DNA of 64,000 bases from Squalus acanthias (taxonomy: Eukaryota), in NCBI GenBank assembly GCA_030390025.1, contig CM059449.1, positions 15,004,001 through 15,068,000 on the forward strand. Direction: 5' to 3'. Shown piece by piece: positions 216 to 59,034 of the stretch; position 1 is the stretch's first letter, and each line of letters opens with the position of its first letter. The notes beneath the pieces are model-generated. The model had not been told where the DNA came from, searched no databases, and worked only from the letters and a program-made list of their open reading frames with translations. The translations under genes were made by a program, and so were the position numbers.

Positions 216-382
216 GATCTAAAGGGATGCCTTCATAAAATCGATTATTCATTCTAAATCTCAAAGAAAAAAGGCGCATTATCGAACAGTACACACATGT
301 TATATACGTCAATTTTGGAAAAAAGTTTTTTGTGGGTAGGGGGGGTGGAGATTTACCAACCTCTGAAATTGTAGGCGGCGAA
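216..382 (-). CDS. Gene X cytoplasmic exons (382-361, 22 nt; 253-216, 38 nt)
   Basis: Acceptors attcctacag| and gagatttag|; donors |gttggt and |gtaagt. Phases 1/2 and 2/1 chain to VRRLQFQR-MNNRFYEGIPLD. The 22-nt exon matches the size and phase of the N1/N2 tail exon. Confidence 0.7.
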
Positions 383-1990
383 CTGTAGGAATCAAAAGTA
401 ACAATAAAAGTAACAATTTGAATATAAACATCACTAAAAAGAACCAAGATTATCTGGCCATTATCACATTGTTGTTTGTGGGATCTTGCAGTGCGCAAAT
501 TGGCTACCGCGTTTCCTGCATCACAACAGTGACTACACTTCAAAAAAGCACTTCATTGACTGTAAAGCGTTCTGAGGGCGTGAAAGGCGCTGTGTGAATG
601 CAAGACTTTCTTTACAACAACATCAAAGGCGAACCAAATGTCACTGGCGTTTGAATGCATGCATCTACTTTATGGTTATATTCGGAAGCGCAATATTGCT
701 CTTTCAAATAGTTACCTTTTGTCAGACCATAACCTGCGGAGAACAGGAGGAAAGCGACTAAAACTCCGGCAGCGGTGTACAACAAGCTGTTGCTTAGCGA
801 CGATTCGCTGGTTGGCTCTGTGGTCGGTTGTACTGGGAGCCGGCCGAGCTGAAGACAAAATAAGAGATTAGTTTCACCCAGAACATCACTTACTGACTCC
901 CGCTCTCCACTGCTGGTGAATGTACAGCGTGCCCCGACACCAGCCAATAGGTAATGCTATTTCAATGGGTGATGAGAACTACAGGTGCAGCGGTGCTGAT
1001 TTTTTCCATCTCCCCTCCATTTGCTAATTGGGCTTGTGATATTTGTTATTTATATTTTTGAATTTAACAGCTAATGCTTTTTTTCAAATTGATACAAAAT
1101 CAATTGTTATCGAAAATATATCGTGACAAAACACCTAACGATTATAATCTCGTCATTGAATTATCTGTTCTCAATATTCTATGGAAGAGGGGTTGGTTGT
1201 GTATGTACAGAGGGACCTGGGTGTCCTTGTACACCAGTCACTGAAAGCAAACATGCAGGTGCAGCAAGCAGTTAGGAAGGCAAATGGTATGTTGGCCTTC
1301 ATTGCAAGTGGATTTGAGTACATGAGCAAGGATGTCTTACTACAGTTATACAGGGCCCTGGTGAGACCACACCTGGAGTACTCTGTGCAGTTTTGATCTC
1401 CTTACCTAAGAAAGGATATACTTGCCACAGAGGGAGTGCAGTGAAGGTTCACCAGACTGATTCCTGGGATGGCAGGACTGTCGTATGAGCAGAGATTGGG
1501 TCGACTAGGCCTGTATTCAGTAGAGTTTAGAAGAATGAGAGGGGATCTCATTGAAACGTATACACTTCTGACAGGGCTAGACAGACTGGATGCAGGGAGG
1601 ATGTTTCCCCTTGCTGGGGGCTCTAGAACGAGGGGTCACAGTCTCAGGATACGGAGTAGGACATTTAGGACTGAGACGAGGAGAAATTTCTTCACTCAGA
1701 GGGTGGTGAACCTGTGGAATTCTTTACTACAGAAGGCTGTGGAGGCCAAGTCACTGAATATATTTAAGAAGTAGATAGATTTCTAGACACAAAAGGCATC
1801 TAGGGGTATGGGGAGAGAGCGGAAATATTGTATTGAGATAGAGGATCAGCCATGATCATATTGAATGGCGGAGCAGGCTCAAAGGGCCTAGTGTCCTACT
1901 CCTGCTCCTATTTTTCTATGTTTCTATGTGTCAGAGTGTATGCACATGTGTTCAGGTAGGCGTGTTAGAGAGACAGAGAGAGAGGTGGGA

Positions 1991-2021
<31 letters not shown>

Positions 2022-5000
2022 CGAGCGGTAGAACATGGTACAAGTTATGATGGCGAGGTAGCGAGATCAGAGTTGCTTTTTCTTTTCTTTACGCTGGACA
2101 ATATATTTAATTTGAAAGGTCTACCTCTATCTTGTCCTGCACTTCATACACTCTACGTGTGTGTCTATGTGTGACTGTGTATGTGTGTGTGTGTGTATGT
2201 ATGTTTGTCTATGTACGTATGTGTGTGTGTGTATGTATGTATGTGTATGTATGTGTGTGTATGAATGTGTGTATGTNNNNNNNNNNNNNNNNNNNNNNNN
2301 NNNNNNNNNNNNNNNNNNNNNNNNNNNNNNNNNNNNNNNNNNNNNNNNNNNNNNNNNNNNNNNNNNNNNNNNNNNNNNNNNNNNNNNNNNNNNNNNNNNN
2401 NNNNNNNNNNNNNNNNNNNNNNNNNNNNNNNNNNNNNNNNNNNNNNNNNNNNNNNNNNNNNNNNNNNNNNNNNNNNNNNNNNNNNNNNNNNNNNNNNNNN
2501 NNNNNNNNNNNNNNNNNNNNNNNNNNNNNNNNNNNNNNNNNNNNNNNNNNNNNNNNNNNNNNNNNNNNNNNNNNNNNNNNNNNNNNNNNNNNNNNNNNNN
2601 NNNNNNNNNNNNNNNNNNNNNNNNNNNNGTGTGTGTTTGTTTGTGTGTATTTGTGTGTGTGTTTGTTTGTGTGTGTGTGTTTATGTGTGTGGAAACTATC
2701 ATAACTGCTTAATAAACGTTTTGGTGATCAAATGGGAATAGTTATTAAACACACAGGGGGAATGTTTATAACCCATGCATCCAGACATAGAAATAGAAAT
2801 AAAAACAGAAAACTCTGGAAATACTCAGCAGACTAGGCAGCCTCTGTGGAGAGAGAAACAGAGTTAACGTTTCAGGTCGGTGACCTTTCCTCAGAACTGG
2901 AAAAAGTTAGAGATGGAACAGATTTTAAGCAAGTGCAGGGGCAGGGAAAGGGAGGTGGGGAGGAAAGAACAAAAGGGACGGTCTGTGATAGGGTGGAAGG
3001 TAGGAGAAATTAAATGACAAAAGGGATGTTAGTACAAAGCAAAAGTCATCAAAATAGAATGTTATGCTAATTTTCACTACATTAATCTATTTTCTTTACA
3101 TGTAAGACCCTCCATGCTCAGTCCGCCGTTCTATAGTAAGGGACCGGCCGAGCCAGGGATTATCGTGGAACAGTCCGTTAGTAATAATCAGACAACTCAC
3201 GCACTATGTCAAGCTTTGTTCCTTGTCCACTTTTTTCCGCCGATCCGAATAGTTGCACTTTGCAGTAGTAGAGCCCGGAATCGTAATGTCTCACGTCTTT
3301 TATAGTAATGGAAGCGTCCCTCCTTTGTGTGAAATCCTCGGCACTTGCCCGCGATAGCCGTCCGCTGAATTCATTGCTTTGGGTGGTGACTTCAGGTCCG
3401 TTGACAGAGTTTTTGTGCCACTTGAACCTACCGACCCCCCCCGGGGGCCCTTCATACGTGCAGTTGAGGAGCACCGACTGCCCCTCCGTGGCGTTAATGA
3501 AGGACGGGACTTGAATTACTGTAATGTTCTCTGCAGCAATTCCTGCCAAGGGATGGTTTCTGATTAGCGAGATGCACCAAGTCTTTATTTCACCTTAACC
3601 AAACGCTGAAGATGCTGGAGGCCGCTAGTGAAGAACGGACAGGGACCGTGCCTCTCCAGACAGCCAGCGGTGGAGGGACATTGTAAATGTAGCAAAGCTC
3701 ATCCTGCTGGGTGTAAATTTCCCAGACCCCTGCCACAGTTGGGGCCCGAGGAGCAGTGGAGGGATTATTGGAACACCACGGGTGCAGAGACGGACAGACA
3801 TTTCCCATCAATTAACTTTAGCCGTTTTCCCATAATCCGTCCCGCTGCAGGGGTGGTGGCACGGGGCCTCGGAAAATTGACTGGTTTGGCTACAGCATGG
3901 GGAGGAGGCCATTGGGCCCGTCGAACCCGTGCCGGCTCTCTACAAGACCTCTTCAGCTAGTTCCACTCCCCCGCCCTTTCCCCGTAGCCCTGCGAATTTT
4001 CCCCCTTCAGGTACTTATGCAACTCTCTTTTTGAAAACCGAGATTGAGTCTGTCTCCACCACCCTCTCAGGCAGTGCATTCCAGATCCTAACCACTCGCT
4101 GCATAAAAAGTTTTCCCTTATGTCGCCTTTGGTTCTTCTGCCAATCACCTTAAATCTGTGTCCTCGGGTTTGCAACCCTTCCGCCAATGGGGACAGTTTC
4201 TCTCTATCTACTCTGTCTAGACCCCTCATGATTTTGAACAGCTCTATCAAATCTCCTCTCAACCTTCTCTGCTCTAAGGAGAACAACACCAGCTTCTCCA
4301 GTCTATCCACAGAACTGAAACCCTCATCCCTGGAATCATTCTCGTAAATATTTTCTGCACCCTCTCTAAAGTGCGATGCCCAGAATTGGACACAGTACTC
4401 CAGTTGAGGCACAACCAGTGTTTTATAAAGACTCATCATAAATTCCTGGCTTTTGTACTCTATGCCTCTAGTTATGAAGGCCAGGATCCCGTTTGCATTC
4501 CCCCCCGCCCCACCCCATGTCGCCTCTGGTTCTTAATCACCTTAAAACTGTGTCTTCTGTTTCTCGAACCTTCCGCCAGCGGGAACAGTTTCTCTGTATC
4601 TACTCTGCCCAGACCCCTCAATTCCACCCATTGGGGTAGATTTCCGTCTTTACCGCCTGGGTACTACACGTCTTGTGACGGAAGGAGAAAGGAAAACCCA
4701 GAGTGAGATTCCCACTCTTCTCATAGAACCCAGCGGATTTCCTTCCAGTGGATTGAATGGGAAGAAAGTCGGGCGAGTGCTGTTAGCACCAGATTGTCTT
4801 TCCTGCGTTCCACCCAGGCCATGCCTAAAGCCCACGTGGTAAAGGCGAAGATTTACACCTTAATCACAGCAAGCATGATTGAGCTCTCTCTCAGTATCGC
4901 AATCAGATAACGGAACAAAATCATTCATTTAAAAAAAAATATCGCACATTCATGGCCAAGTCGTTAACATCCTCGCCTCTGCGTCAAGCTTATGGTTTGG

Positions 5001-5740
5001 AGCCTCACTCCAGCATTCCATCATATCATTCTGGCCCATACCCCAGTGCAGCGCTGCATGCTGCAGTTACGGTTCTGTCGATCAGGCATAAAGTTGAACA
5101 TAAGAAGATAAGAAATAGGAGCAGGAGTCGGCCATTCGGCCTTTCGAGCCTGCTCCGCCATTCAATAAGATAATGGCTGATGTTCTACCTCATCTCCACT
5201 TTCCCACACTATCCCCATATCCCTTGATGCCCTTCATATTCAAACATCTATTCATCTGTCTTGAATATACTCAATGACTGAGCCTCCACAACCCTCTGGA
5301 GTAGAGAATTCCAAAGATTCACCACCCTCTGAGTGAAGAAATTTCTCCTCATCTCAGTCCTAAATGGCCGACCCCTTATTCTGAGACTGTGACCCCTGGT
5401 TCTAGACTCCAGCCAGGGGAAACATCCTCCCTGCACCTACCCTGTCAAGGGCCCTCTCTGTCTGTTCAGTTGATTCAAGTGGCCGTTAAAATTTTCATGT
5501 TACTAATCTAAGAAGTCCTGGCCAACTGTCCTTTCCAATTAACATCAGCGCCTCGTTTCTGTTTGATCCCTAGCGCCTTTGTTTTCAACTAAGCCCCGCC
5601 ACTGTTAGCTTTGTATGCGAGGCGCTGTGATATCGTTCCGAGCGAGCGTTGAAGGCGCAGCATTCTCTGACTGAAGTATGGTACAGTCGGTACTTACCAG
5701 AGACAAGGGTCAGTGCCCACATAACGCATCGGGAATCCAT
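216..5740 (-). CDS. Gene X: NKp30/NCR3-like single V(J)-domain type I receptor with a Tyr-containing tail; 3' end probably outside the window. Exons 5740-5698, 3542-3201, 832(or 848)-716, 382-361, 253-216
   Basis: GT-AG exon chain with matching phases gives MDSRCVMWALTLVS-GIAAENITVIQ...C...W...DSGLYYCKVQLFGSAEKSGQGTKLDIV-stalk-LLYTAAGVLVAFLLFSAGYGLTK-VRRLQFQ-RMNNRFYEGIPLD. The V domain has NKp30 hallmarks (GPEV..QSNEFSGRL, DF...ASITI, YYCKV..GxGT). Confidence 0.8.
716..832 (-). CDS. Gene X stalk/transmembrane exon
   Basis: QPTTEPTSESSLSNS-LLYTAAGVLVAFLLFSAGYGLT-K, donor G|gtaact. In frame only from the AG giving exon start 832; the upstream AG (start 848) is out of frame. Confidence 0.75.
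1200..1927 (+). mobile_element. CR1 LINE 3' fragment
   Basis: ORF2 C-terminal motifs LYRALVRPHLEY, RRMRGDLIE, FFTQRVVNLWNSL; CR1 tail (ttctatg)n. Confidence 0.9.
1960..2690. repeat. (GA)n and (GT/AT)n microsatellites flanking an assembly gap (N 2277-2628)
   Basis: Directly visible. Confidence 0.95.
2795..3045 (-). mobile_element. Penelope-derived terminal-repeat fragment with a minimal hammerhead motif (2862-2897)
   Basis: Minus strand GTT-CTGAGGA-A-AGGTC-ACC-GACCT-GAAA-CG-TT-AAC. Same repeat family at ~20070-20750, 31475-31780, 46285-46915 and 59172-59470. Confidence 0.65.
3201..3542 (-). CDS. Gene X Ig V(J) exon, NKp30-like
   Basis: Within ORF 3178-3549. Acceptor cttggcag|, donor C|gtgagt, 342 nt, phase 1/1. 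Canonical C, W, D-x-G-x-Y-x-C and GQGT. Confidence 0.93.
3905..4622 (-). mobile_element. CR1 LINE 3' fragments
   Basis: ORF 3957-4439: LYKTLV.PQLEYCVQFW, RRLRGDLIE. Confidence 0.88.
5098..5450 (-). mobile_element. CR1 LINE 3' end
   Basis: TRGHSLRIRGRPFRTEMRRNFFTQRVV plus the 3' tail. Confidence 0.88.
5698..5740 (-). CDS. Gene X leader exon
   Basis: ATG..MDSRCVMWALTLVS G|gtaagt: 43 nt, phase 1. Same length and MxxxxVxWAxxxxS pattern as the N1 leader. Confidence 0.8.
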
Positions 5741-12375: not shown

Positions 12376-13032
12376 TAAACAAGCAACATTGCTCCCGATC
12401 CCGTCGATTTCCCGATGGGTGGGTTAGGGTAAAATTGCGGAGTATTATATGTGTCTAAGACAAGGAGGGTGTGTGACTTGCAGGAGAACTTGGAGGTGAT
12501 GGTGTTCCCATGCACCTACTGCCCTTCTAGGTGATGGAGGCCATGGGTTTGGGAGGTGCTGCTGAAGAAGCCTTGCCAGTGCATTCAGGAGATCGGACGC
12601 ACTGCAGCTGCCCTACGCCTGGGTGATGGAGGGGGTGAATGTTTAGGCAAGTGGATAAGGTGTCAATCAAGCAAACTTCTTTGTCCTGGGTGGTGTGGAG
12701 CTTCCTGAGTTTTACTGCAGCTGCATCCATCAGAGCAAGTGGAGAGTACACCAACACTCCTGAGTTGTTATTCTATTTAGATATCTTCTACTTCATTTCA
12801 GCTGCTGCCTGGATTGCGGTGGAATGCTCGACTTCCGCAGGGCACAAAAACGGGCGGTGGCTTATCGGCATTGATATGAAAAAGAAAATTAGGTGGGGTT
12901 TATTACAGGCTGCCGATCCGCCACTGCCCGTTTTCCGCTCCCAAAGGAAGTTGAGCTTTGACCCTGCTGTTCTTTTTCCAGGTGCTCTCTCCTATTTGTA
13001 ACTACAGTGTTGATTTATCCCAGTATAGGCTC

Positions 13033-15007
13033 CAGAAAAAGCAGCAAACCTGAGGATTGGGAGCAGTTTAGGATTCAGCAAACGAGGACAAAGGGATTAA
13101 TTAAGAGGGAGGAAATAGAATATGAGAGTAAGCTTTCAGGGAACATAAAAACTGACTGTAAAAGCTTCTATAGATATGTGAAGAGAAAAAGATGTGTGAA
13201 GTCAAGCATAGGACCCTTGCAGTCAGAATCAGGGGAATTTATAATGGGGAACAAAGAAATGGCTGACAAATTAAATACATACTTTGGTTATGCCTTCACA
13301 AAGGAGGACACAAATAAACTCCCAGAGATGTCGGGGAACATAGGGTCTAATGAGAGGGAGGAATTGAATGAAATCAGTATTTGTAGGAATATGGTGTTAG
13401 GGAAATTAACGGGATTGAAGGCCGATAAATCCCCAGGGCCTGATAATCTACATCCTAGGGTACTTAAGGAAGTGGCCCTAGAAATAGTAGATGCATTGCT
13501 GGTCATCTTTCAAAATTCTATAGACTCTGGAACAGTTCCAATGGATTGGAGGTTAGCTAATGTAACCCCACTATTTAAAAAAGGTGGTAGAGAAAAAACG
13601 GGTAATTTTCGACCGGTAAGCCTGACATCGGTAGTGGGCAAAATGCTAGAGTCCATTATAAAAGATGTTATAGCAGAGCACTTGGAAAACAGTGACAGGA
13701 TCGGACAAAGTCAACATGGATTTACAAAAGGTAAATCATGCCTGACTAATCTACCGGAATTTTTTGAGGATGTAACTGGTAGAATAGATAAGGGAGAACC
13801 AGTGGATGTGGTGTATTTGGACTTTCAGAAGGCTTTCGATAAGGTCCCGCATAAGAGATTAGCGTGCAAAGTTAAAGCACATCGGATTGGGGGTAAGGTA
13901 CTGATTTGGATAGAGAACTGGTTGGCAGACAGGAAGCAAAGAGTTGGAATAAATGGGTCTTTTTCCGAGTGGCAGGCAGTGACTAGTGGGGTACAGCAGG
14001 GATCAGTGCTAGGACCCCAGCTATTCACAATATATATTAATGATCTAGACGAGGGAACTAGATGTAATATCTCTAAATTTGCAGACGACACAAAGCTGGG
14101 TGGGCGTGTGTGCTGTGAGGAGGATGCAGAGAAACTCCAGTGTGATTTGGACAGGTTGGGTGATTGGGCAGGTGCATTGCAGATGCAGTATAATGTAGAT
14201 AAATGCGAGGTTATCCACTTTGGTGGCAAAAACAGGAAGACAGATTATTATCTGTACGGCAATAGATTGGGAAAAGGGGAAGTGCAACGAGATCTGGGAG
14301 TCCTTGTGCACCAGTCACTGAAGCTAAGCATGCAGGTGCAGCAGGCGGTTAAGAAAGCAAATGGTATGTTGGCCTTCATAGCGAGAGGATTCGAGTACAG
14401 GAGCAAGGATGTCTTGCTGCAGTTGTACATGGCCTTGGTGAGACCACACCTTGAGTATTGTGTGCAGTTTTGGTCGCCTTATCTGAGGAAGGATGTTCTT
14501 GCCATGGAGGGAGTGCAGCGAAGATTCACCAGACTGATACCTGGGATGGCAGGAATGACGTATGATGAGAGATTGGGTCGATTAGGCTTATATTCGCTAG
14601 AGTTTAGAAGAATGAGAGTGGATCTCATTGAAACTTATAAAATTCTAACAGGACTAGACAGACTAGATGCAGGAAGGATGTTCCCGATGGCGGGGGAGTC
14701 CAGAACCAGAGGTCACAGTCTAAGGATAAGGGGTAAGCCATTTAGGACTGAGATGAGGAGGAATTTCTTCACCCATAGAGTGGTGAACCTGTGAAATTCT
14801 CTACCACAGAATGCAGGTGAGGCCAATTCATTAAATATATTCAAGAAGGAGATATATTTATTTCTTAAGCCTAAAGGGATCAAGGGATATTGGGGGAAAG
14901 CAGGGACAGGGTACTGAATTTGGATGATTAGCCATGATCTCATTAAATGGCGGAGCAGGCTCGAGGGGCCGAATGGCCTACTCCAGCTCCTATCTTCTAT
15001 GCTTCTA
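13033..15007 (+). mobile_element. 5'-truncated CR1 LINE with a long open RT frame; copy-A-specific insertion
   Basis: ORF 13007-14794 contains KSPGPD, NFRPVSLTS, YLDFQKAFDKV, QGSVLGP and FADD. Copy B has the empty site ataggctc|tggtcgtcc at ~41188. Confidence 0.95.
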
Positions 15008-15529
15008 TGGTCGTCCTACCGCAGCATTACAGTCTCTTGGGTCAGATAACTCTTAAAAGTACACGTTGTTTAAAAAAAAGGTTGGGCTGGAATAAGTAGC
15101 AAAAAGCTGATCATGTAGATCCCGTCGAAAGCGCTCTGAAAGTGAAAAGCATGCTGTTGCATTTACACAACTGGGCTCAGCACCATTCCGTGACATGTGG
15201 CCAACACATGATCATATTTCAGACAATTGCCAGGCACTATTCATTTAAATCAAACCCGAGTACTATCGCCGGTTTTCATTTACAAACTCTGCGCCCTTTA
15301 ACTTCAGTCTAACATGTTTGTCATTTTTTAAACAGGTGCAAGATGAGTTTCAATCCCCCGGGTGCGTAAACACCCACTGAAATTAGTGAAGGATGAAACT
15401 GAACTGTGAGGCGTTATTCCTTTGTTTCAATGTACCGCTTGTGTAATGTTAAAGTAGTGCTTCTTTCTTAAATATTCTTAAAATATGACTTTTCCGACTA
15501 CAATTGGAAAACGTGCTGAGTGAACAGAA

Positions 15530-15580
15530 TTCCTCTGTGTGGTGTTAAACCACCAGAGGGGTTCGTCATATAAGTCAGCG
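15530..15580 (+). promoter_or_regulatory. Candidate P1 proximal promoter (RUNX-like TGTGGT, TATA-like TATAAG)
   Basis: Motifs lie ~100-135 nt upstream of the ATG; TATAAG is also present in copy B. Motif match only. Confidence 0.35.
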
Positions 15581-15671
15581 TCTGTTGTGGGATGTTTGTT
15601 ACACTTAATAACACTTTGGGACGCTGCAGGTCAGATGTTAGCTCGTAGTGTCCTGCGGAGCAAGAATCAAA

Positions 15672-44800: not shown

Positions 44801-47129
44801 TTACCGAAAGAATGGCTTTCCTTGAAATCATCAATTTAATGACAATGGACTCAGATTTTTAGTACTGCGAGGTGGAAATTGCGGCGGTTGGGAAAGCAAG
44901 CGGGACAGGAACACAACTTATAATAACTGACAGTGAGCAGAAAAGATCAGAGTTCGTTTTAAGAATTTATCAATATTTTGACATTGGTATGGCTGTACAT
45001 GTGCTATGCAAAGAGATTTCAGTTCTGTGTGCTGAATTGTGTCCGTGTGTCAGTATCACTTTCAAAGTACATCGAGCACATTTGGTCGACAATTAATATC
45101 CTGAAAGTGCCATATATCTGACTTGAATCTGACTATTCAAGGCGCGGTGCTTTAGGAATAGGAATACACGAGCTTCAGGCTACTTCCCCACCCCCACCAC
45201 CCCACCACCTGAAGGGGAGGGTTATCTCAAAATAGAACTTCGCATTATCCCTTGAGTTTCTTGCTTGGCACCTTACATATCTCTGTTAAGGCAGCTATGT
45301 TCGTCCCTTTTTACAAAGCTAACGAGTCCGAACTCTTCTAGTCTTTATTCTCTCTCATAACCTCGCACTGGAACTCGAGGGAACAGGCTAGCGTTCACTC
45401 CACCTCCGGGACTTGCATGTCTCCCTTGAGCCTGAGTGACCAGAAATAAGCACAATACTCAAGATGCTATATGACCAGAGCACTGTACGGTTGGATCCCG
45501 CACCATATAAAAGGAAACATGCCTTCTATATTTTTTATTCGTTCATGGGATGTGGAATTCGCTGGCAAGGCCAGCATTTATTGCCCATCCCTAATTGCAC
45601 TTGAGAAGGTGGTGGTGAGCCACCTTCTTGAACCGCTGCAGTCCGTGTGGTGAAGGCACTCCCACAGTGCTGTTAGGGCGGGAGTTCCAAGATTTTGACC
45701 CAGCGACGATGAAGGATCGGCGATATACTTCTAAATCAAGATGGTGTGTGACTTGGAGGGGAACTTGGAGGTGATGGTGTTCCCATGCGCCTGCTGCCCT
45801 TGTCCTTCCAGGCGGTAGAGGTCGCGAGTTTGGGAGCTGCTGCTGGAGAAGCCTTGGCGAGTTTAATGAAATAGGCTTCAGGTAGAATTTACTGTTTTCG
45901 ATATAAGCCTTTATTTTAAACAGGTTAGCGTCTTGGTTAAAATGAAGGGTATGTGGAACGACAGTATTGCAAAAAATAATTATAGTTTTTTTCAGTTTCC
46001 ACGGGGATGCATTACCTTAGATTACATATAAAAATAGGAAACGGCCTTTCTGTAAGGTATAGAACGCCGCTGGAATGTTATTTCAGTTTTCATGTCCTAT
46101 AACTGAGCAATCCAAATTAAATTATTAAATTGCGAACTAGTGGTCTTCGTTATGTGGATTTCTGATTTCAATTGATGGGCGGTGGTGGGGGGCGTGGGGG
46201 GGGGGTGGGCGGGGTGATCGCCTGTTATACACTCCGCCCAGTAATGCGTCCAATTGCCTTAAAATAAAACTGAATATTGGGCGCACCAAAGCCAAATGCT
46301 GCGGATGCTGGAAATCTGAAATAAGAAAGAGAAAATGCTGGAAAATACTCAGCAGTTCAGGCAGCATCAGTGGTGAGTGAGAAACAGAGATAACTTTTCA
46401 GGTTTCGGAAAGAAGGGCAACGACCCGAAACTTAAACTCTGTTTCTCTATCTCTGCCTGCAGATGATGCCTGACCTGCTGAGTGTTTCCAGCATTTTCTG
46501 CTTTTTATATTGAATATTGGGCGTGTTGTACAGCGGTCGGCCAATATGATTCTGTCTGCCTTGCGAGCCTGTCCATGTCCAATTTCACCCCTATAACAAC
46601 ACAAAAACAGAAAATGTTGGAAATACTCAGCAGGTCAGGCAGCATCCGTGGAGAGAGAAACAGATTTAACGTTTCAGGTAGATGACCCTTCGTCAGAACT
46701 GGAAAAAGTTGGAGATGGAACAGGTTATTAAGCAAGTGTAGGGCCAGGGAAAGCGGGGAGGGGAGGAAAGAACAAAAGGGAAGGTCTGTGATAGGATGGA
46801 AGGCAGGAGAGATTAAGAGACACAAGGGATGATGGTGCAAGGCAAAAGGAGATTTTAATGGGACAAGTTAAGAAACAAAGGATGACTCTAGATGAAGTGT
46901 AAATGGCAATGGCTGAATGATCGACCACCCCACCATTTTTTTGCATTATCTTTCACTTCAACCAAGCGCCACCATACTGACTATATCATTGTTTCTGTTT
47001 CTAACAGGAGCTAGAGTCGAGCCTATCTGCAATTTCCCCACTCTCAGCGCTGGATTACAAGTTACAAAAACGGAGCTGCTGATCATTCTCATAATCACAG
47101 GCCTGACGACGTACCTCTGTCCCACGTAG
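41854..47129 (+). pseudogene. Gene P2: pseudogene paralogue of P1 (exons 41854-41911, 44594-44932, 47008-47129)
   Basis: TGA at 41887-41889 in the leader (TTA in P1). TAG at 44860-44862 replaces the Tyr of the Y-x-C motif. V to E change in the TM. Confidence 0.88.
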
Positions 47130-47354
47130 GGAAAAATAGACTTTGATTTATAACAAGATACATCTGCAAACGCTGTTGGAAAAGATGTCCAAAGTCGATG
47201 TAAATTTTCTCAGGAAGTTCTTTATGTTGCCCATGGTCGATATCTTTGTGTTACAGCATTGCATGGATGTGGATTAAAGCATGGGCGAGGATAGATATCG
47301 TTTTTATTACAAAATATTTCAATTAATTTTACTGCACCGTCAACATAATAACTA

Positions 47355-47564
47355 TGATGTGGAGATGCCGGTGTTGGACTGGGGTGGACAAATGTGAGAA
47401 GTCGCACAACACCAGGTTATAGTCCAGCAGCTTTATTTGAAATCACAAGCTTTCGGAGCGCTGCTCCTTTGTCAGGAGAAGTCACCTGACGAAGGAGCGG
47501 CGCTCCGAAAGCTTGTGATTTCAAATAAAGCTGTTGCACTATAACCTGGTGTCGTGCGACTTCT
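47355..47564. mobile_element. 210-bp fold-back Penelope-derived insertion with 13-bp TSD and two opposed hammerhead motifs, copy B only
   Basis: TSD AACATAATAACTA at 47342 and 47565; empty site at ~21881 in A; same termini as 31857-33070. Confidence 0.85.
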
Positions 47565-47719
47565 AACATAATAACTAGCAGATGTCATTCTGTTTGAGAG
47601 ACGTTTTTAATTTAAAAAATGACAAATGCATAGATTTTTTTAACTGTCATGTTCGGTATAAAATGTCCAGTTTGTGCATGATCATTAATGTTACAGCAAA
47701 TGTTCTTTTACCCTACGAA

Positions 47720-48208
47720 ACTCGGCAGGCCGTGTCCTAACTCGCACCAAGTCCCAGCTCCCCTGTGCTCGCTGACCTACATTGGATCACGGTTAAGCAG
47801 CGCCTCGATTTCAAAATTCTCATCCTTGTTTTGAAATCCCTCCATGGCCTCGCCCCTCCCTATTGCTGTAATGTCCTTCAGCCCCCCAACCCCCCCGAGA
47901 TATCTGCGCTCCTCTAATTCTGCCCTCTTGAGCATCCCTGATTATAATCACTCAAGCATTGGTGGCCGTGCGTTCTGCTGCCTCGGCCCTATGCTCTGAA
48001 ATTCCCTGCCGAAACCTCTCCGCCTCGCTACCTCTCTTTCTTCCTTTAAGACGCTCCTTAAAACCTACCTCTTTGATCAAGCTTTTGCTCATCTGCCCTA
48101 ATTTCTCCCTATATGGCTCGGTGTAGATTTTTTTTGTCTTACAACAACATGGGACGTTTTACTGCGTAAAAGGCGCTATATACATACAAGTTGTTGTTGT
48201 TGTTGTTG
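47720..48208 (+). mobile_element. L2-type LINE 3' end with (GTT)n tail
   Basis: Encodes PVLADLHW..VKQRLDFKILIL..KSLHGLAP ... FKTLLKTYLF, typical of the L2 ORF2 end. Confidence 0.8.
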
Positions 48209-51200
48209 ATGAATCCCTTAAATGTCATTATAACAGCAGTTTTGTGCTGGTCAGGAGTCTTGATTACTCATCCTGTGACTCTAAAGAAGATCCACTTCCA
48301 CTGCCGAAGGATGAAATATCTGTTGGTAAATTACAATTCTCAAAGACTCCAGAACAGGTCCTTGGCTGCTTACATGGTAGAACTCAACTGACTTTACAAA
48401 AGCGACATTCTTATAACGTATTAAATCAACATGGTATTTTTATGCTATTATAAATGTCTTCTGGGACTGCTTTTGTTTATATTGCTAATTATTATGAAAG
48501 TTTTTGCTGTCTTTAATTCAATAGTGCTCGCCATGGGAATAACCTCCATACGTGCTTGCAATGCCTTTAACTGAATGCTGAACACGATCTATTCAAAATG
48601 CATGGATGCTTAAGTTGTGCTTTTTTATTGGCCCCTTTATGCGAGACATCTATTTTAATGTGACGTATCTACACCATGTATGAAAGGGCTCTTGGTATTT
48701 TTTCCCCGATTAAAGCGAACGCTTTCTTTCTCGTGTTTAATCCAAATTCTTCTTTACTTGCTGGGATCAGTAGAAGTTCCATCCTCTGCTTGTCAGTAAC
48801 AACTCGCGTGCAACCCAGTGCGTCCTGTAGGGGATTATAGGACTAGGCGTCACAGTTTAAAAATTAGAGCCAGACCCTGCGTGAGTGAAATTAGGAAACA
48901 CTTCTATACACAAAGGGTGGTACAAGTTTGGAACTCTCTTCTATAAACGGCAATTGTTAATTTTAAATCCGAGATTGATAGATTGCTGTTAACTAAACGT
49001 ATTAAGGGATATTGGGTCAAAAGTTGGGAAAAGCGAGAGTGGCCGGAGAGAGAGAGAGAGAGAGAGAGAGAGCGGGAAAAAGTGAGGCTGTGATTGGAGG
49101 ATCAGCGAGTACCAGGGGAGGTTGTGTGTGGAACTCAACAGCATGTGACAAGAAGGGGGAGGAGGCTGGAATAGGCCGCAGTGCCCCGGGAAAGACCGGA
49201 TTTAGAAAGTTAGAGTGCTGCAAATTCATCAGCCGAGGTTTGGGGAGTGAGTTGGCGGGTGGGGTGCGCTCGGGAAAATCCCCATTAGCCAGTCAGCCTC
49301 TGAGCAGAAGTTTGCGGGCCGGATGAAACTGGTGGAACGGGGAATGTGGGACCATAAATACACACGAATACCACCAACAGCAATTTCCAGGCCTAAAGTG
49401 ACAGTAATGTGCCTGATTCCACTGCTTCTGATCTGTGATGTACACCTACATCTGGACTCAGATTGTGCGGCTAAAGGTATCCCATTCATTAAGTTATTCA
49501 CATATACAGAATGGTACATGCACGATGGGCCGACCGCCCTCACTCTGTGCTGTATCATTGAATAGGAGGAACTAATGGAATGATGGAAGTGTTGATGTCC
49601 AGGTGTCCAACTCAGTTCCTGGCAGGCGTTGTGCACGACAGGGGCAATGAGAGCAAATGCAGCCATTGGAATAAAAAGTTGAAATCCGCTCTCATTTCCT
49701 TGGCCCAGGGCTGAAACCAGTCACAGATGAAAGACAGCTCCTTCTGCTGGCTTTGAGAGCCCCCTGAAAAATGCTGAACATAATAAGAAATAGGAGCCGA
49801 GTGAACAGTAACGAGTATGAACGCTCAACATGTTGGTTTTCATTTTAACAATGGCATGAACCAGTTTATTTTCCAGGATAGCCCGCCCCTTAATATAGGG
49901 GTCTAATACATTTCATACAAATGTGATAAATGTTCACAACTAACACTAAAGAGTCTAAAGAGTCCAATGTTAAAGCTCACTAACTAAGTTAGAGGACAAA
50001 ATATTCGCCTGGAAATTCCCATGGAGGGTTCTCCGATCATCCGCCGTTGAAGATGCCACAGAACACCCGAGCTACCGCCCAAGTTATGGCGGGAGATCGG
50101 GACAACTCTGCGGAAATTCCACCATTGTCCTTCGCGGGTGGGGGCAGGGACGTCTCATCATTGGGGTGAAATGTGTCGGCTCCTCTTACTTCACCGAAGC
50201 GTACAGCACCGCTTCTCGCTTCACACGGCGCTCAGTTTGATGCTGTCCTGAACATTCAGCGTGGCGTATTGCAACTTGTCATCTCCCTCTTTCTAGTGAG
50301 ATGAAAGTTTTTCAGTGTTGAATAAAATATTGTAAACTGAATATAGCGGAGGGCCTCAAACCCAGATGTTGTGCAGTTTCAATGGAATATAATTCAACCC
50401 ATTAAACATTCTACATATAATTAAAATATGACTCCACCTATCAAATATTGTTTCGTTAAATAGGATAGATCGCGCCGTCTTAAATATTCCTGTCTTTTTG
50501 AATATATTTCAGCGAGTTAACGATTGCACGAGTTAAGTAACAAATATAATGTTAAAATTCATGCCTTTAGAACAATTCACACTAAATGAATTCAGGAGCA
50601 GTGGGTCAGTCAGCATCTGGGCAAGGCAGATTAACATTTGGGAATAACTGTTCAGGAGCACTTTCCGTTGAAGGCAAAGAGCCAGCCCACCGGTTACCCT
50701 GTGTTTTCTCCTCCAGGTGCTGACTGACCTACTTTGCATATCCAGCATTTTCTGTTTCGGCTTCAGATTTCCTCCTTATCTCGACTTGTCAAAGTAGGTG
50801 TATTTTTGCGTGTGTATGCCTGGGTGCCCCTATTTTGGGGTCTATTTTAGTGTACTTAGGTGTATCTAGTGCTTTTTTTACTCATTCATGGGATGTGGGC
50901 GTCGCTGGCAAGGCCAGCATTTATTGCCCATCGCTAGTTGCCCTTGAGAAGGTGGTGGTGTGTCGCCTTCTTGAACCGCTGCAGTCAACCTACTCCCACA
51001 TTGTTTTTCATAGCGGTTTTTTAAAACTGAGTGGCCATTTTAGAGAACAGTTGAGAGTCAACCACATTGCTGTGGGTCTGGAGTCACATATAGGACAGAC
51101 CAGGTAAGGAAGGCAGATTTCCTTCCCTGAGGGGCATTAGTGAATAAGATGGGTTTTTACGATAATCCGATAGTTTCATGTCACCATTACTGATACTAGC

Positions 51201-51249
51201 TTTTTAGTGCAGATTTATTTCATTAAATTTAAATTCCCCAGTTGCTGTG

Positions 51250-54150
51250 TCATAGTCATAGAGTTATACAGCAGAGAAAGAGTCCCTTCTGCCCATCATG
51301 TCCACGCCGGCCATCAAGCCCTGTGTATTCTAATCCCATTTTCCAGCACTTGGTCCGTAGCCTTGTATGCTATGGCGTTTCAAGTGCTCATCTAAATGCT
51401 TCTTGTTTGTTGTGAGGGTTCCTGCCTCTACAACCCTTTCAGGCAGTGAGTTCCAGAATCCAACCACACTCTGGGTGAAAAACTTTTTCCTAAAATCCCC
51501 TCTGAACCTCCTGCCCCTTACCCTGAAACAATGCCTCCTGGTTATTGACCCCTCTACTAAGGGGAAAAGTTCCGTTCTATCTACCCTATCCATGCCCCTC
51601 ATAATTTTGTACACCTCAATCAGGTCCCCCCTCAGCATTCTCTGCTCTAAGGAAAACAACCCCAGCCTGTCCAGTCTCTCTTCATAGCTGAAGCGCTCCA
51701 GCCTAGGTAACATCCTGGTGAATCTCCTCTGCACTCTCTGCAATGCAATAACATCCTTCCTATACTGTGGCGACCAGAACTGCACACAGTATTCCAGCTG
51801 AGGCCTAACTACTGCTTGTACAGCTCCATCATAACCTCCCTGCTCTTATATTCTAAGCCTCGGCTAATGAAGGCAAGTATCGCATATGCCTTTTTAAACA
51901 CCTTATCTACCTCTCCTGCTGCCTTCAGGGATCAATGTACATGCACATCAAGTACCCTCTGATCCTCTGTCCTTCCTCGTGTCCTACCATTCATTGTGTA
52001 TTGCCTTGCCATGTTAGTCCTCCTAAAATGCATCACCTCACACTTTTCAGGGTTAAATTCCATTTGCCACAGTGCTGCCCATCTAACCAACCCGTCTATA
52101 TCGTCCTGTAGCCTGAGGATTCCCTCCTCGCTATTTACCACTCCACCAATTTACGTGTCATCTGCGAATTTACTGATCACACCTCTTACGTTCATTTCTA
52201 AATCATTAATATACACTACAAACAGCAAAGGACCCAGCACCGATCCCTGTGTTGCACCACTGGACACAGGCTTCCAGTCAGAAAAACAACCTTCGACCAT
52301 CACCCTCTGCCTCCTGCCACTAAGCCAAATTTTGAGTCCAATATGCGAAATTGCCCTGGATCCCATGGGCTCTTACCTTCTTGACCAGTCTCCCATGTGG
52401 GACTTTGTCAAAAGCCTTACTGATGTCCATGTAGACTATATCAACTGCACTACACTCATCCACAAACCTAGTCACCCTCTCGAAAAATTCAATTAAATTG
52501 GTTAAACATGATCTCCGCCTGACAAAGCCACGCTGACTTTCCTTGATTAATCCTTGCCTCTCCAAGTGGAGACTAATTCTGTCCTTCATAATTTTTTCCA
52601 ATAATTTCCCTACCACTGATGTTAGGCTCACTGGCCTGTAATACCCAGGTTGAACCCTACAAACCTTCTTGAATAATGGTACTACGTTAGCTGTTCTCCA
52701 GTACTCTGGCACATCCCTTGTGGCCAGAGAGGTTCTGAAAATTTGTGTCAGAGCCCCTGCAATCTCCTCCCTTACCTCACACAGCAGCCTGGGATACATC
52801 TTGTCTGGACCTGGGGATTTATCCACTTTTAAGCCCGCTAAAACCGCTAGTACCTCCTCTTTCTCAACACTAATTTGTTCAAGTATATCACAATCCCCCT
52901 GCCTGATTTCTATGCCTACATCGGCCTTCTCCAGAGTGAACCCAGGTGCAATATATTCATTTCAAACCTCACTTACATCTTCCAGCTCTACACACAGATT
53001 GCCACTTTGGACCCTAATGGGCCCTACACTTTCCCTGGTTATCCTCTTGCCCTTAATATACTTGTAAAACACGTTGGGATTTTCCTTTATTTTGCCCACT
53101 AGTGTTTTTTCATGCTCCCTCTACGCTCCACTAATTTATTTTTTAATACCCCCCTGCACTTTCTATACTCCACTAGGGCTTCCACTGTTTTTAGTCCTTT
53201 GTATCTGCCAAAAGCCTCCCTTTATTTCCTAATAAATTTTTGTATATCCCTTGACATCCAGGGTTCCCTAGGCTTGTTGCTCCCACCCTTGACCTTTACG
53301 GGAACATGTTGACGTTGTACTCTCTCTATTTCCTTTCTGAAATACTCCCACTGCTGTGATGTGGATTTTCCTACAAGTAGCTGATCCCAGTCCACTTTGG
53401 CCAGATCCTGCCTTATATTAAAATCGGCCTTCCCCCAATTTAGAACCTTTCTTTCCGGTCCATCTTTGTCCTTTTCCATGACTACCTGAAATCTCACCGA
53501 ATTATTGGTCACCGTCACCAAAATGCTCTCCTACTGACACTTCTACCACTTGCCCGGCTACATTCCCTAGAATTAGGTCCAGCACCGCCCCCTCTCTTGT
53601 AGAACTTTCTACATCCTGGCTCAAAAAGCTCTCCTGGATGCACTTTAAGAATGCGGCACCCTCTAAGCCTTTCACACTCTGACTATCCCAGTTAATATTG
53701 GGGAAGTTGAAATCCCCCCCTATTATTTATATACTTCTCAGGGATTTGCCTACATATCTGTTCCTCTATCTCCCCCTGACTGTTTGGGGGCGTTTAGTAC
53801 ACTCCCAGCAAAGTGCTTGCCCCCTTTTTGTTTTCTAGTTCTACCCATATGGCCTCATTAGAGGAACCTGCTAAGATATCATCCCTCCTTACAGCAGTAA
53901 TTGACTCCTTGATTAATATTGAGACACACGCTCCTCTTTTACACTGCCCTCTGCCTCGCCTGAAGATTCTATACCACGGAATATTGAGCTGCCAGTCCTA
54001 CCCCTCCCTCAACCATGTCTCTGTGATAGCAACAATATCATACTCCCATGTGTTCATCAACACCTTCAATTCATCTGCCTTACTCGCAAGACTCCTTGCA
54101 TTAAAATGAATGCCATCCCACCTTGCCATACTCCCTTGTGCCGTTAGAGA
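51250..54150 (-). mobile_element. CR1 LINE (~2.9 kb, degenerate), copy B only
   Basis: ORFs 53222-53521, 52320-52826, 52151-52366 and 51330-51785; interrupts the SINE shared with A. Confidence 0.92.
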
Positions 54151-56082
54151 TATGCTCTGCCTTGAATTCTGGGACTGTTAGATTTCATTTCATGCCTTTC
54201 TTTGATTGGCTTTCTCTTGAATTATAACTCATATTTTAGTCCCATCTCTATTCAATTTCGATTTTCAACTTGCATCGCCTGTGCGTAAAAGTGGCGTTTG
54301 GGATGGGCCGCACCTGTGCTTTACGCCTGTGTGGCAAGTTGAGAATCTACCCCACATCTTCAAGAAGAAAAGTTGAGGCCGTCCAACTTCGTTTCATCTT
54401 TAGATTTTTACATCCAACTGAGAGAACTGTTTACATGATAATCTACCTGGAAAAGTAAACCAGAGGTCAGTAGGTTTAAAAATAACAGAATTAGCCCAAG
54501 TCATTGTGCTACATACCCGATTTGTTCATCTGCACGCAGAGCTGTCATAATTCCTCTCTATAAAGCAGAGAAAAAGGAAAAAAAGAAAGACTTGCATTTA
54601 TATAGCGCCTTTGACCACCTCAGGACGTCCCAAAGCGCTTCACAGCCAATGAAGTTCTTTTTGAAGTGTAGTCGCTGTTGTAATGTAGGAAACGCGGCAG
54701 CCAAATTGCGCATAGCAAGCTCCCACAAACAGCAATCTGACAATGGCCAGAAAATCTGTTTCAGTGATGTTCATTCAGGAATAAACATTGGCCGGGACAC
54801 CGGGGAGAACACCCCTGCTCTTCTTCAAAATAGTACCAAGGGATATTTTACTTCCAGCTGAGAATGTAGTCGGGGCCTTGGTCTACTGTGTCATCCAAAA
54901 GATGGCACCTCCGGCAATGCAACGCTCCCTCAGCACTGCACTGGGAGTGTCAGCCTAGATTTTTGTGCTCAAGTCTCTGGAGTGCGACTCGAAGGCCACA
55001 ACCTTCAATGTTTCAGAGGCGTGGGTTAACAACGGAGCCACTGCAAATGACCCTGCCTAATTTAATTTACTTGAACAGTGTATACAATACAATAAAACAT
55101 ATTGTGCCGTAGAAAAAGCGCTGTAATGCACTGTGGTCTGATGCTATAGGATACAACATAACATGGAAGAAAACGAGAAGGCAATAAAATAAAATATACA
55201 GTAGGATGTACCGTATTGCACAACAATAAAACGATACAATTAGTATGGTCCAATATATAATACGCTACCACGCAATATAAAACAGCCTAAGATTTTTCTG
55301 TGCGATATAAACGGTGTTCATATCAGATTCCGAGGCCCACTATTTTAACTGTTTACTTTAAACTAATGTGAAAAGCATGAGCGCGCCAAGCACTCGTACG
55401 AGAATAGGGTGATATCCAGGCTAATCTATTATAATAGATGATATATAATACAGCATAACATTGAAACGTACTTTTAAATATCATGTAATAATACGTCACA
55501 CAAAAAAGTCAGCGTGTGGTAAGAACATATTTTAAAATATTATATTAGCCATAAACCTTAACACTTCAAATTGACATTGTGACCAAGACGTCTAAAATGT
55601 GTCACTCAATAGCCGTTTTGGAAGCAAGAGTTATTGAATCATAGAGCCATACAACACAGAATGAGGCCATTCGGCCCAATCTGCCCGTGCCGGCTCTCTG
55701 CAAGAGCTATTAATTAGTCCCACTCCCCCCTGCTCTTTCCCCATAGCCCTGAAACAGTACCCTTTTTAACTATTTATCCAAATCCCTTTTGAAAGTTAAT
55801 GTTGAATCTGCTTCCAGCACGCTTTCAGGCAACGCATTCCAGATCACAACAACTCACTGAGTAAATAAAACATCTCCTCATCTCCCCTTGCCTTTTTTTT
55901 TTACCAATACCTTAAATCTATGACCTCTGGTTAGCGACAGAATAATCAGACTGAACAAGACTGAACTCTTGGTCAACGGATTATACGTGATAGAATAGAA
56001 AATTAACCATATTATCAATTAAAATCGAATTAAATCGAAGGAGTAAGCGTTCGGAGTTTATTAAAAGTGACAGGTTGTTCAC

Positions 56083-56505
56083 ATAGAAACATAGAATCCA
56101 GGAGCAGGAGTAGGCCATTCGTCGAGCCTGCTCCACCATTCAATACGATCATGGCTGATCATCCAAATCCAGTACCCTGTCCCTGCTTTAATCCCCACAG
56201 TACACATATCCCACCCTACCCCCGTAACCCCACGTATTTAATTCCCCCTAACATATCCCATCCTATCCCCATAACCCCACATATTTAATCCCCCCCTAAC
56301 ACTAAGGGTCAATTTATCATAGCCAAATCAACCTAACCCGCACATTTTTGGACTGTGGGAGGAAACCGGAGCACCCGGAGGAAACCCACGCAGACACGGG
56401 GAGAATGTGCAAACTCCACACAGACAGACACCCGAGGTCAGATTCGAACCCGGGTCTCTGGCGCTGTGAAGCACCAGTGCTAACCACTATGCCACCGTGC
56501 TGCCC
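56083..56505 (-). mobile_element. HE1-type V-SINE (tRNA head, V core, CR1-type tail), copy B only
   Basis: GGGCAGCACGGTGGCATAGTGGTTAGCAC...GGGTTCGAATC head; core GTGTGGAGTTTGCACATTCTCCCCGTGTCTGCGTGGGTTTCCTCCGGG; empty site at ~28228. Confidence 0.85.
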
Positions 56506-56670
56506 GTTTCTTTCTGTCACCCACCTGTTTCATGGATCACTGAGTAGAGCGGATCTGAACTGAAGCAAAAGAGGATACCAGAAAATGTAGGCATCCAAAA
56601 CAATAAAATACATTAAAGAAAAAGAAAGTGGCTTTCTTTAAAAAAAAAGTCGATCAATGTAAACAGTTAC

Positions 56671-59034
56671 CTGGTGGGTTGCTGAAGAGCGACTGTGAGG
56701 AGAGAAAGACAAAGACAGAAAAATTAAAGAGCTGAATTTATTGATTATATCTGCAAGAAGCAACTGAAATAATTGATATCGAAAGAATTGAATCAAATTT
56801 TGGGGGCAGTTTTAAACAAACCCGCGGAGAAACGGACGGGATCGGGTGCAACGTTTTGAAGTCAAATGAGAGCAACATTGGACGCGTCTAAACCCGGCGT
56901 TCCACCCGATGCCGTGCGTGTCCCGCCGGGTGAGTTCGAATAAAATTACCAGAGAATTTGCCAACCACATGGAACTCAGTAGAGGTACAATTAGTGCTGT
57001 TACCTCTCTTACGACGCCGGCTGATAACAACTATGACTATGATGATGATGATGATCAGGAGGGGAACCGCTACCGTTGCAAAGACGAGTGGTGGGATCAT
57101 TGGTGCGGACTCGCCGTGGCTGCTCTCTCCACCACCTGTGTGTAAATGTAAAGTTTCTTTTGTGAGACAGAGCATTCAAGAGCAGGGCAATGATCACATT
57201 GAGATTGAGGATCAGCAAATGTGACACAGATTCCCAATCCCCTTTGACATGCGGGGCTATTTCACACTGGCATACATGAAACTAGGCCACGGATCAAAAC
57301 GCAAAATGTCACCAGTGGGCAACTGGAGATATTCCCACCCTGGAAGTAACACTGGGAGAAATTTAATGTAGGGACGTTTAATGGGTTGGTGCCAGTTTCC
57401 TTTCTTTTAAATGCCGGGGGGTAGAGGTGAGGTCGTGTGAGTTCTGTTAACATCGGAACTTAGAAACAGGAGGAGGCCATTCAGTCCCTCCAGCCTGTTC
57501 CACCATTCAATGAGATCATGGCTGATCTGCGACCTAACTCCATATTACCGCCTTTGGCCCATATTCCTTAATACGTTTGGTTAACAAAAATCTATCAATC
57601 TCCGATTTAGAATTAACAATTGATCTAGCATCAGTTGTCGTTTGAGGAAGAAAGTTCCAAACTTCTAGCAGACTTTGTGTGTGTAGAAGCGTTTCCTAAT
57701 TTCACTCCTGAAAGCTCTGCTATAAGTTCTACACCATGCCCCCTCGTCCTAAACTCCCCAACCAGCGGAAATAATTTCTCTCCATCTACCATCTCTGTTC
57801 TCCTTAATATCTCGAGAGTGTCCCGCCCAGTTTTCTTGAATTCACTAGAACCTGGAGATCCAATAGATCCTGAGCACGAACCAGAAAATCGTCCCCTCCT
57901 ATTTACGGGATGCTTAAGACAAAGCGAACATCTGGAAATTAGAAGTGCCGAGACTGGGTGGTCAACGTGGTTCTTCCGCGGACCCATCTTTGCATTTTGT
58001 TGGCGCGCAATGTTGTAATTTCTATTTGCACACACAATTATATCCGTCACTACCTCCATTTACAGGATGACAGTGAAATCTAACTTATCATAGAAGTGTT
58101 TACCGGTTTATTTCCAATATTGGCACGCGGTGATTTCACGTGTTGCTCTCATTACGGGGCTCCAGTCTTCGCCTCGCTCACTGTAACTGGGTTGACTACT
58201 TATCTACAGCCCTACCTAAAATTGTATACAGCAACTGAAGGTAATTAATATCCCCTCCATTATTTTATTTTAAAAGGTCATTCTCGGGATACGGGCGACG
58301 CTGGCGAGGCGGGCATGTTATTGTCCATCTCTGGTTGACCCCTTGCGAAGGTGGTGGTGGGCCGCCTTCTTCTTGAACTGCTGAAGTTCAGTGTGGTGAA
58401 GGTTCTCCCGCAGTGCTGTTAGGGAGGCAGTTCTGGGATTTTGGAAGGAACAGCGATACAAGTCCAAATCAGGATGGTGTGTGACTTGGCGGGGGACTTG
58501 GAGGTGATTGTGTTCCCATGCGCCTGCTGCCCTTGACCTTCTGGGTGGTGGAGGTCGCGGTTTTGGGAGTTCCAATTGATCTAATGGAGAATTTATCTCT
58601 ACGGCCGAAATTACCCCTAGCAAAATCCCATATGATTGCGTGCAATTTCATTGGTAATAACATCTCCACCAATCCAAACTTACTGTGTTGACGCCGTTCC
58701 ACGGTCACTGTTGTCCCGGTTCCGTCTGCTGCAGCGAATCCCACGAGCTGCACTTTGCAGAAATAGAACCCGGTATCTTCCGGTTTCAGCTGGATTATTC
58801 TAATGGTCGCGTCTCCCCTCTGGCTGAAATCCGCTTCACTTGCCCCGAACACCCTGCCTCTGTATTCCGCTGTATTGTTGGAAACGTCATTTCCCTGTTT
58901 GTTGCCTCGGTGCCACGTGTAGCTGCCGATTCCTGTGGGACTCTCATATCTACAGAGCAGGTCCGCTGTCTGTCCTGCGGTTTTGGTGAGAGATTGCGGG
59001 CTCTGAATTACGGTAATATTTCCAACAGTAACTG
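56671..59034 (-). CDS. Gene N2: single-V paralogue of N1 (exons 59034-58684, 57135-57004, 56692-56671); leader not found, functional status unknown
   Basis: ORFs 58469-59077 and 56888-57175. Exon sizes of 351, 132 and 22 nt are identical to N1 and the frames are open. Homology to copy A ends at ~61286, before the leader position. Confidence 0.8.

Follow-up and report, generated by a model that had tools for sequence, protein, structure and literature searches.

The window analysed here, a 64 kb stretch of contig CM059449.1 of Squalus acanthias, contains six exons that each encode a variable (V)-type immunoglobulin (Ig) domain together with a J-like G-x-G-T strand in the same exon (6/6), i.e., germline-joined V(J) exons related to the natural killer (NK) cell receptor NKp30 (NCR3). 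These exons could be sorted into five genes, of which N1, P1 and X are seemingly intact, while P1B and N2 are seemingly broken (Table 1). A strict motif scan alone returned four of the six, all on the minus strand, and tblastn with the window's own exons added two on the plus strand, at 18384-18722 and 44594-44932, the latter with an in-frame stop. An earlier note on this DNA had counted four V(J) exons; they lie where it placed them, but the number was too low.

The Pfam V-set cut-off was passed by all five exons scanned, the broken copy 44594-44932 being left out of the scan. All searches were done exon by exon. For the X, N1 and P1 exons, and for a P-lineage profile of P1 and five relatives, the top four PDB matches were chains of human NKp30 (NCR3). 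The expect (E) values for NCR3 were 3.5e-14 for X (runner-up 9e-9), 3.4e-13 for N1 (runner-up 5e-9) and 1.3e-16 for the P-lineage profile (runner-up SIRP-alpha, 1.2e-11), which gives X and the profile margins of about five orders of magnitude and N1 one of about four. P1 by itself matched NCR3 with E 1.4e-6 and TCR-alpha with 2e-5, a margin of merely 14-fold, and on these scores is the weakest case for NKp30 likeness among the V exons. From the Pfam and PDB matches we class the V exons of the window as NKp30-like, as the earlier note had proposed.

Table 1. Exons of the NKp30-like genes and related features in the window (position 1 is the first letter of the window; TM, transmembrane; ITIM, immunoreceptor tyrosine-based inhibitory motif).
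Feature	Position	Strand	Supporting observation
X tail exon with YEGI, then gtaagt donor	216-253	-	matches Heterodontus P0127 residues 137-148; 0/300 shuffles reach the score
X 22-nt micro-exon, entered in phase 1 and left in phase 2	361-382	-	length and phases as in the N1 micro-exon
X stalk and uncharged TM exon	716-832	-	43% identical to Scyliorhinus P0029 X-type TM, E 2e-5
Assembly gap in X V-to-TM intron	2277-2628		TG-rich microsatellite on either side
X V(J) exon	3201-3542	-	67% identical to Heterodontus P0127
X leader exon, 14 codons + 1 nt, phase-1 gtaagt donor	5698-5740	-	10/15 residues match the Heterodontus P0127 N-terminus
Duplication unit A, holding convergent P1 and most of N1	15005-31856		self-comparison
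P1 leader exon	15672-15729	+	resembles leaders of Stegostoma P0009 and Heterodontus P0154
P1 V(J) exon	18384-18722	+	62% identical to Heterodontus 'NCR3-like' P0007
P1 last exon: one Cys in a short stalk, one Lys in the TM, 3-5-residue tail, stop	21547-21668	+	
N1 last exon, ITIMs LQYATL and VLYASV, stop	25018-25125	-	56% identical to Heterodontus P0002 tail end
N1 tail exon c2	26657-26697	-	9/13 residues match Chiloscyllium P0004; 0/300 shuffles reach the score
N1 tail exon c1 (PLYSVI)	28248-28282	-	
N1 22-nt micro-exon	28394-28415	-	
N1 stalk and uncharged poly-Ile TM exon	28727-28858	-	
N1 V exon 2	30418-30768	-	71% identical to nurse-shark NCR3 P0001
N1 V exon 1	30985-31335	-	567-bp tandem duplicate of V exon 2; 351 nt, in frame
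N1 leader exon	34885-34927	-	
Possible alternative N1 5' exon	37657-37719	-	62% over 21 residues to Heterodontus P0002 N-terminus, E 0.006
Duplication unit B	41186-59552		87-94% identical to unit A in blocks
P1B leader with stop	41854-41911	+	
P1B V with stop	44594-44932	+	
P1B TM exon, Val to Glu beside Lys	47008-47129	+	
N2 last exon, 1-nt deletion, second ITIM lost	50186-50292	-	
N2 c2 with in-frame TGA	54517-54557	-	
N2 c1	56525-56559	-	
N2 micro-exon	56671-56692	-	
N2 TM exon	57004-57135	-	
N2 V exon	58684-59034	-	

All exons assigned to N1 are collinear with the nurse-shark NCR3 protein P0001, which is derived from cDNA, and with models from Heterodontus and Chiloscyllium. Through a tandem duplication of 567 bp (30277-31413, 93.5% identical), N1 has two V exons whose acceptor and donor sites are identical. 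Both are 351 nt long and in frame, and both a receptor with two V domains and alternative use of the two exons are possible. Among the three V exons of the N type, dN/dS is 0.48-0.66. The receptor predicted from these exons would carry V domains, either one or two, on an uncharged TM segment and end in a tail with two ITIMs. As its build matches the nurse-shark NCR3 cDNA and two ITIMs are present, N1 is classed as the putative inhibitory type; once tyrosine-phosphorylated, motifs of this kind would be expected to recruit SHP-type phosphatases. The possible alternative 5' exon upstream of the N1 leader is an ATG-started frame of 21 codons without a GT donor directly after it.

The leader and V exon of P1 match proteins of Heterodontus, Stegostoma, Mustelus, Chiloscyllium and Pristis. 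A word-seeded search with the P1 V exon gave four candidates, none of them scoring, and an index-free HMMER search then gave the relatives. In the 6.3 kb between the P1 V exon and the 3' end of N1, no plausible phase-1 TM exon lies outside repeats other than the one with the Lys-containing TM segment. Judged by its design, P1 is most likely a candidate adaptor-dependent activating receptor. [quoted passage not shown] As for relics of an ITIM tail downstream of P1, the sole weak match (E 1.5, 23836-23877) was rejected since it lies within a repeat.

X is encoded on the minus strand near the start of the window, and its V(J) exon is separated from its TM exon by an intron that contains an assembly gap. 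As the gap is intronic, no exon or reading frame runs across it. The micro-exon of X is collinear with residues 130-135 of P0127 and is not significant alone (46/300 shuffles reach the score), while the exon with the YEGI motif has phases identical to those of the first tail exon of N1. The Heterodontus protein runs about 130 residues further with repeated Y-x-x-I cassettes. Because a gtaagt donor ends the YEGI exon and because of the homology to P0127, the X tail very probably continues beyond the start of the window, with position 216 being the end of an exon and not of the protein. X would thus combine an uncharged TM segment with signalling through its own tail of repeated Y-x-x-I cassettes, of which the first alone lies in the window.

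Three side observations concern the X type. Two AGs are found 16 nt apart at the TM exon (716-848), and the second alone gives the TM frame. Three Heterodontus isoforms (P0127, P0155, and P0156) skip the TM exon, from which soluble forms would result. The X-type TM segment of the catshark protein P0029 (residues ∼430-450) contains an Arg that is missing from X here, so that TM charge varies within the X lineage.

P1 and N1 lie tail to tail and form a cassette of ∼17 kb that has been duplicated. In the second copy, P1B (41854-47129, plus strand) is a decayed copy of P1 and a pseudogene, with stops in both leader and V exon. Between the V exons of P1 and P1B, 21 replacement changes stand against 3 silent ones (ratio ∼2), too few to tell relaxed constraint from positive selection. 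N2 (50186-59034, minus strand) is a damaged copy of N1. No copy of the N1 leader was found for N2 in the window; a second assembly gap is present near the window end (63037-63175), and the N2 leader could be there or beyond. The region thus evolves by duplication and decay, and one cassette that remains intact next to another that is decaying would correspond to ordinary birth-and-death evolution with the convergent P/N cassette as the unit.

The three membrane and tail modules have AG/GT borders and matching intron phases throughout. This bears out the claim of the earlier note that NKp30-like V exons are joined to three different signalling modules. The design it gave for P1 (stalk Cys, TM Lys and no tail) is what the last exon encodes, with 3-5 residues before the stop, and the neutral poly-Ile TM segment with a multi-exon tail was found for N1 as a five-exon TM/tail part, at whose end are two ITIMs that the note had not named. 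N2, to which the same module had been ascribed, shares the build of N1, but its tail is not intact given the in-frame TGA in c2 and the 1-nt deletion in the last exon. For X, the neutral TM segment held good, while the YEGI motif taken as the whole tail did not, as the exon ends in a gtaagt donor and holds only the first cassette.

The V exons fall into three lineages (P, N, and X) with 29-45% identity between lineages. The V exon of P1 is 29-30% identical to the N exons and 35% identical to that of X. Near-identical V exons (85-90%) are seen only for N1 V1, N1 V2 and N2, all on the same N module. A V-domain tree was made with 61 rows, i.e., the six window exons and 55 domains from stored proteins of at most 480 residues; isoform duplicates (P0154-P0156) and domains that scored below 45 bits or covered fewer than 95 profile positions were omitted. 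The alignment is short (117 columns), the root is arbitrary, and tetrapod NKp30 was left out.

In this tree, the P exons group with domains from Pristis, Heterodontus, Mustelus, Stegostoma, and Chiloscyllium (support 99/96), the N exons with Heterodontus, nurse shark, Chiloscyllium, and Scyliorhinus (97/100), and the X exon with Heterodontus and Scyliorhinus (98/91); all three clades include other elasmobranch orders. The N clade contains nurse-shark P0001. The P exons group with Heterodontus and Pristis proteins named 'NCR3-like' and adjoin the clade of nurse-shark P0075, and X groups with Heterodontus P0127, which NCBI names 'SIRP beta-2-like'. Because the lineages form separate supported clades and share only 29-45% identity, the three V types appear as old subfamilies and not as recent twins.

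The signalling parts found on these V lineages in other sharks vary. Relatives of the P lineage with a stalk Cys and ITIM-type tails were identified in Heterodontus (P0007, which also has a TM Arg) and Stegostoma (P0009), and the nurse-shark sister form P0075 likewise has a stalk Cys and an ITIM-type tail. The first half of Mustelus P0158 is an NKp30-like model with a stalk Cys and a TM Lys, and in Chiloscyllium P0071 two V domains are combined with a TM Arg and a tail of 18 residues. The Scyliorhinus model P0029 reads through from an N-type gene into an X-type gene that follows it, matching N1 and X here in order and orientation.

A model from Polypterus (P0157) fuses a two-V, Arg-TM NKp30-like protein with PRRC2A (BAT2). 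PRRC2A is a major histocompatibility complex (MHC) gene located in the class III region. The fusion would therefore fit MHC linkage of the NKp30 family in a bony fish.

Taken together, the window is probably a piece of a large, duplicating shark NKp30 (NCR3)-family cluster in which three old V(J) lineages have signalling parts of their own. Several observations weigh against this reading. Most of the X tail lies outside the window, so the signalling class given for X is provisional. The Lys-TM exon of P1 has no homologue detectable by BLASTP against the Mustelus Lys-TM model or in the ESM Atlas, and it is no better conserved than its surroundings, being 92.6% identical between P1 and P1B (5 replacement and 4 silent changes) vs 93.5% for the flank. 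Tailed relatives of the P lineage in other sharks have ITIM-type tails and not a Lys-TM stop exon. RNA support was found for none of the junctions in nine sequencing runs, none of which is recorded as RNA and which gave interspersed repeats only (share of query words 0.05-0.11). For four of these runs on 15660-21659, depth was 0 at 18460-18659 in all and no joint was seen at an exon border; the run coverage around P1 speaks neither for nor against its expression. These observations on P1 would also fit a gene that makes no functional membrane receptor, its Lys-TM exon being a chance frame or relic and the gene being secreted, spliced elsewhere or a young pseudogene, and the predominance of replacement changes between the V exons of P1 and P1B fits relaxed constraint. 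We nevertheless consider this unlikely. The leader, V and TM exons of P1 are all open, with splice sites in phase, a pyrimidine-rich cag acceptor and a gtgagt donor, whereas the duplicate has gained two stops over the same 519 nt. The single TM-exon candidate outside repeats in the downstream 6.3 kb is the one proposed, no ITIM-tail relic is seen there beyond the weak match in a repeat, and the Mustelus model has the same stalk Cys and TM Lys. It is also conceivable that X is an assembly chimera in which different genes supplied the V part and the TM/tail part flanking the gap at 2277-2628, as the two sides are joined only across a gap of estimated size in a microsatellite. This is most improbable, since both sides match X-type models of other sharks. 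On one side, V exon and leader correspond to P0127 and to the latter half of P0029; on the other, the TM exon corresponds to this half of P0029 too, and P0127 is matched by the micro-exon and the first tail exon. Strand, exon order and intron phases all fit as well.

The earlier note had further seen in these genes a candidate paired-receptor system. In the sense of KIR or SIRP, which calls for activating and inhibitory members whose ectodomains closely resemble each other, this was not supported: P1 V is only 29-30% identical to the N exons and 35% to X, and the three belong to separate clades. Two traits of paired systems are present, namely an ITIM-tailed member (N1, with LQYATL and VLYASV) and clustered duplication and loss (the ∼17 kb cassette, the 567-bp V-exon duplication and two decayed copies). 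A third, a member with a basic TM residue and a minimal tail, is represented by the predicted P1 exon 21547-21668, for whose use neither RNA nor a homologue lends support. Similar ectodomains on opposite types are not found in the window. Because the ectodomains of the activating and inhibitory members differ greatly, the paired-receptor reading is only loosely supported. A strict pair, in which P1 (activating) and N1 (inhibitory) of one cassette have shared or related ligands and balance each other as KIR2DS/KIR2DL or SIRP-beta/SIRP-alpha do, might be suggested by the opposite signalling designs that lie tail to tail and were duplicated as one unit, and by the P lineage having ITIM tails in other sharks and a Lys-TM exon here, as if signalling parts had been exchanged on one V lineage. 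We find such a pair quite improbable, as the V exons of its two members stand in different ancient clades at the low identity given above and all near-identical V exons of the window are on the same N module. In the cluster we propose, the three types would instead be separate receptors with different ectodomains and not activating and inhibitory twins for one ligand. The looser idea stands, i.e., members with opposite signalling parts whose V lineages have changed partners over time. We put forward only tentatively the wider possibility that the shark NKp30 family is a very old paired system of megabase scale that grows by the convergent P/N cassette and has swapped signalling parts among V(J) lineages. 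P1 would then be derived, as an activating form, from a V lineage whose members in Heterodontus, Stegostoma and the nurse-shark sister clade have ITIM tails. If true, a VJ domain that does not rearrange would have carried the logic of paired receptors close to the root of the jawed vertebrates.

The remainder of the window looks like transposon remains. No further Ig-like exon and no B7-like or other ligand exon could be identified among its 426 open frames of at least 55 codons. Among the 54 open reading frames (ORFs) of at least 110 codons, 10 were scanned against Pfam; four match reverse transcriptase (two of them below the Pfam cut-off, one of these with an additional weak GIY-YIG match), six match no family, and no non-receptor cellular gene was found among these 10. 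An open ORF of 595 codons at 13007-14794 has a reverse-transcriptase domain (E 2e-30) and the look of a long interspersed nuclear element (LINE), with related fragments across the window. A 454-codon ORF at 59707-61071 weakly resembles reverse transcriptase and GIY-YIG, with either match under the Pfam cut-offs; the two form the domain pair of Penelope-like retroelements.

A multigene NCR3 family in sharks is already published and annotated, and the gain here is one of detail, not of a new principle. In the NCBI annotation, relatives in several sharks are named 'NCR3-like' or 'SIRP beta-like'. Whether the family had been described was left open in the earlier note; for the family itself it has, as seen from the existence of a nurse-shark NCR3 family paper and from the accessions MT914154-914161, which a passage of PMC12227049 cites as 'NCR3 genes'. 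No description of shark NKp30 signalling types was found in our literature search, among whose texts Kinlein et al. (2021) was not included; NCR3H paralogues are mentioned in an excerpt of PMC11999971. NKp30 belongs to a small set of NK-cell receptors whose conservation extends from sharks to humans and, as a non-rearranging VJ gene, is often discussed in connection with the origin of antigen receptors (PMC12227049, PMC10751288). The window adds exon-level models for three signalling designs within one species, a convergent P/N gene pair as the unit of duplication, and a V lineage that is ITIM-tailed in some sharks but has a Lys-TM stop exon in Squalus acanthias. If P1 is expressed and coupled to an adaptor, this would be a genomic record of activating and inhibitory diversification of the NKp30 family in cartilaginous fish.

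The nurse-shark family has reportedly been described by Kinlein and colleagues as a multigene NCR3 family with varied signalling motifs. Two nurse-shark proteins are deposited as NCR3, P0001 and P0075, and probably come from the MT914154-914161 set. N1 V is 71% identical to P0001 of this family (Kinlein et al., 2021, Immunogenetics 73:333), which shares the build of N1 with a leader, a V(J) exon, an uncharged Ile-rich TM segment and a micro-exon tail with tyrosine motifs, while the P lineage of the window is sister to the P0075 clade. Unlike the nurse-shark family, the window, from another species, has duplications of its own, i.e., the two N1 V exons and the P/N cassette with its decaying copy. 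P0001 and P0075 both have uncharged TM segments and tails, whereas P1 ends in a Lys-TM stop exon.

Mammalian NKp30 has a single V-type domain with its J-like strand in one exon, as in the V exons of the window. The mammalian NCR3 gene is single-copy and its product has an Arg in the TM segment. Typical of NKp30 are also a place in the MHC class III region and binding of a B7H6-type ligand. Compared with the mammalian form, which has a TM Arg and a short tail and couples to CD3-zeta/FcR-gamma, P1 has a Lys, and N1, N2 and X have tails and no TM charge; in place of one gene there are many here, with ITIM or Y-x-x-I tails. NCR3 is described in excerpts as an MHC-linked, non-rearranging VJ gene (PMC12227049, PMC10751288), and mammalian NKp30 couples to CD3-zeta according to a passage of PMC12272517.

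SIRP proteins are the second-best group of solved relatives for the window V exons, and 'SIRP beta-like' is the name that NCBI gives to several shark relatives. The SIRP-beta combination of a TM Lys with a short tail, as seen in the rat SIRP-family model P0090, resembles the design of P1. SIRP-beta forms disulphide-linked dimers and couples to DAP12. SIRP proteins have one V and two C1 domains, with near-identical V domains in pairs, whereas no C-type exon is present in the window, where opposite types have 29-30% identity in their V domains. By phase and homology, the V exons of the window splice straight to a stalk/TM exon, which differs from the V-C1-C1 layout of SIRP.

Models with several NKp30-like V domains are found among the relatives of P1, with three each in the Leptodactylus 'NCR3', in Bombina and in Heterodontus P0046. 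Polypterus P0057 has two V domains and a TM Arg, and the two in-frame V exons of N1 could give a similar multi-V form. The multi-V models of frogs and others fall in tree clades different from those of the window exons. In Xenopus, the NKp30-like XMIV genes are expanded.

NITR of bony fish and KIR/LILR and CD300 of mammals are further clustered germline receptors of the Ig type, in which members with ITIM tails and members with a charged TM segment and a short tail have arisen through duplication and decay. Their V domains are unrelated or distant to those described here, and their opposite types usually have near-alike ectodomains, unlike those of the window.

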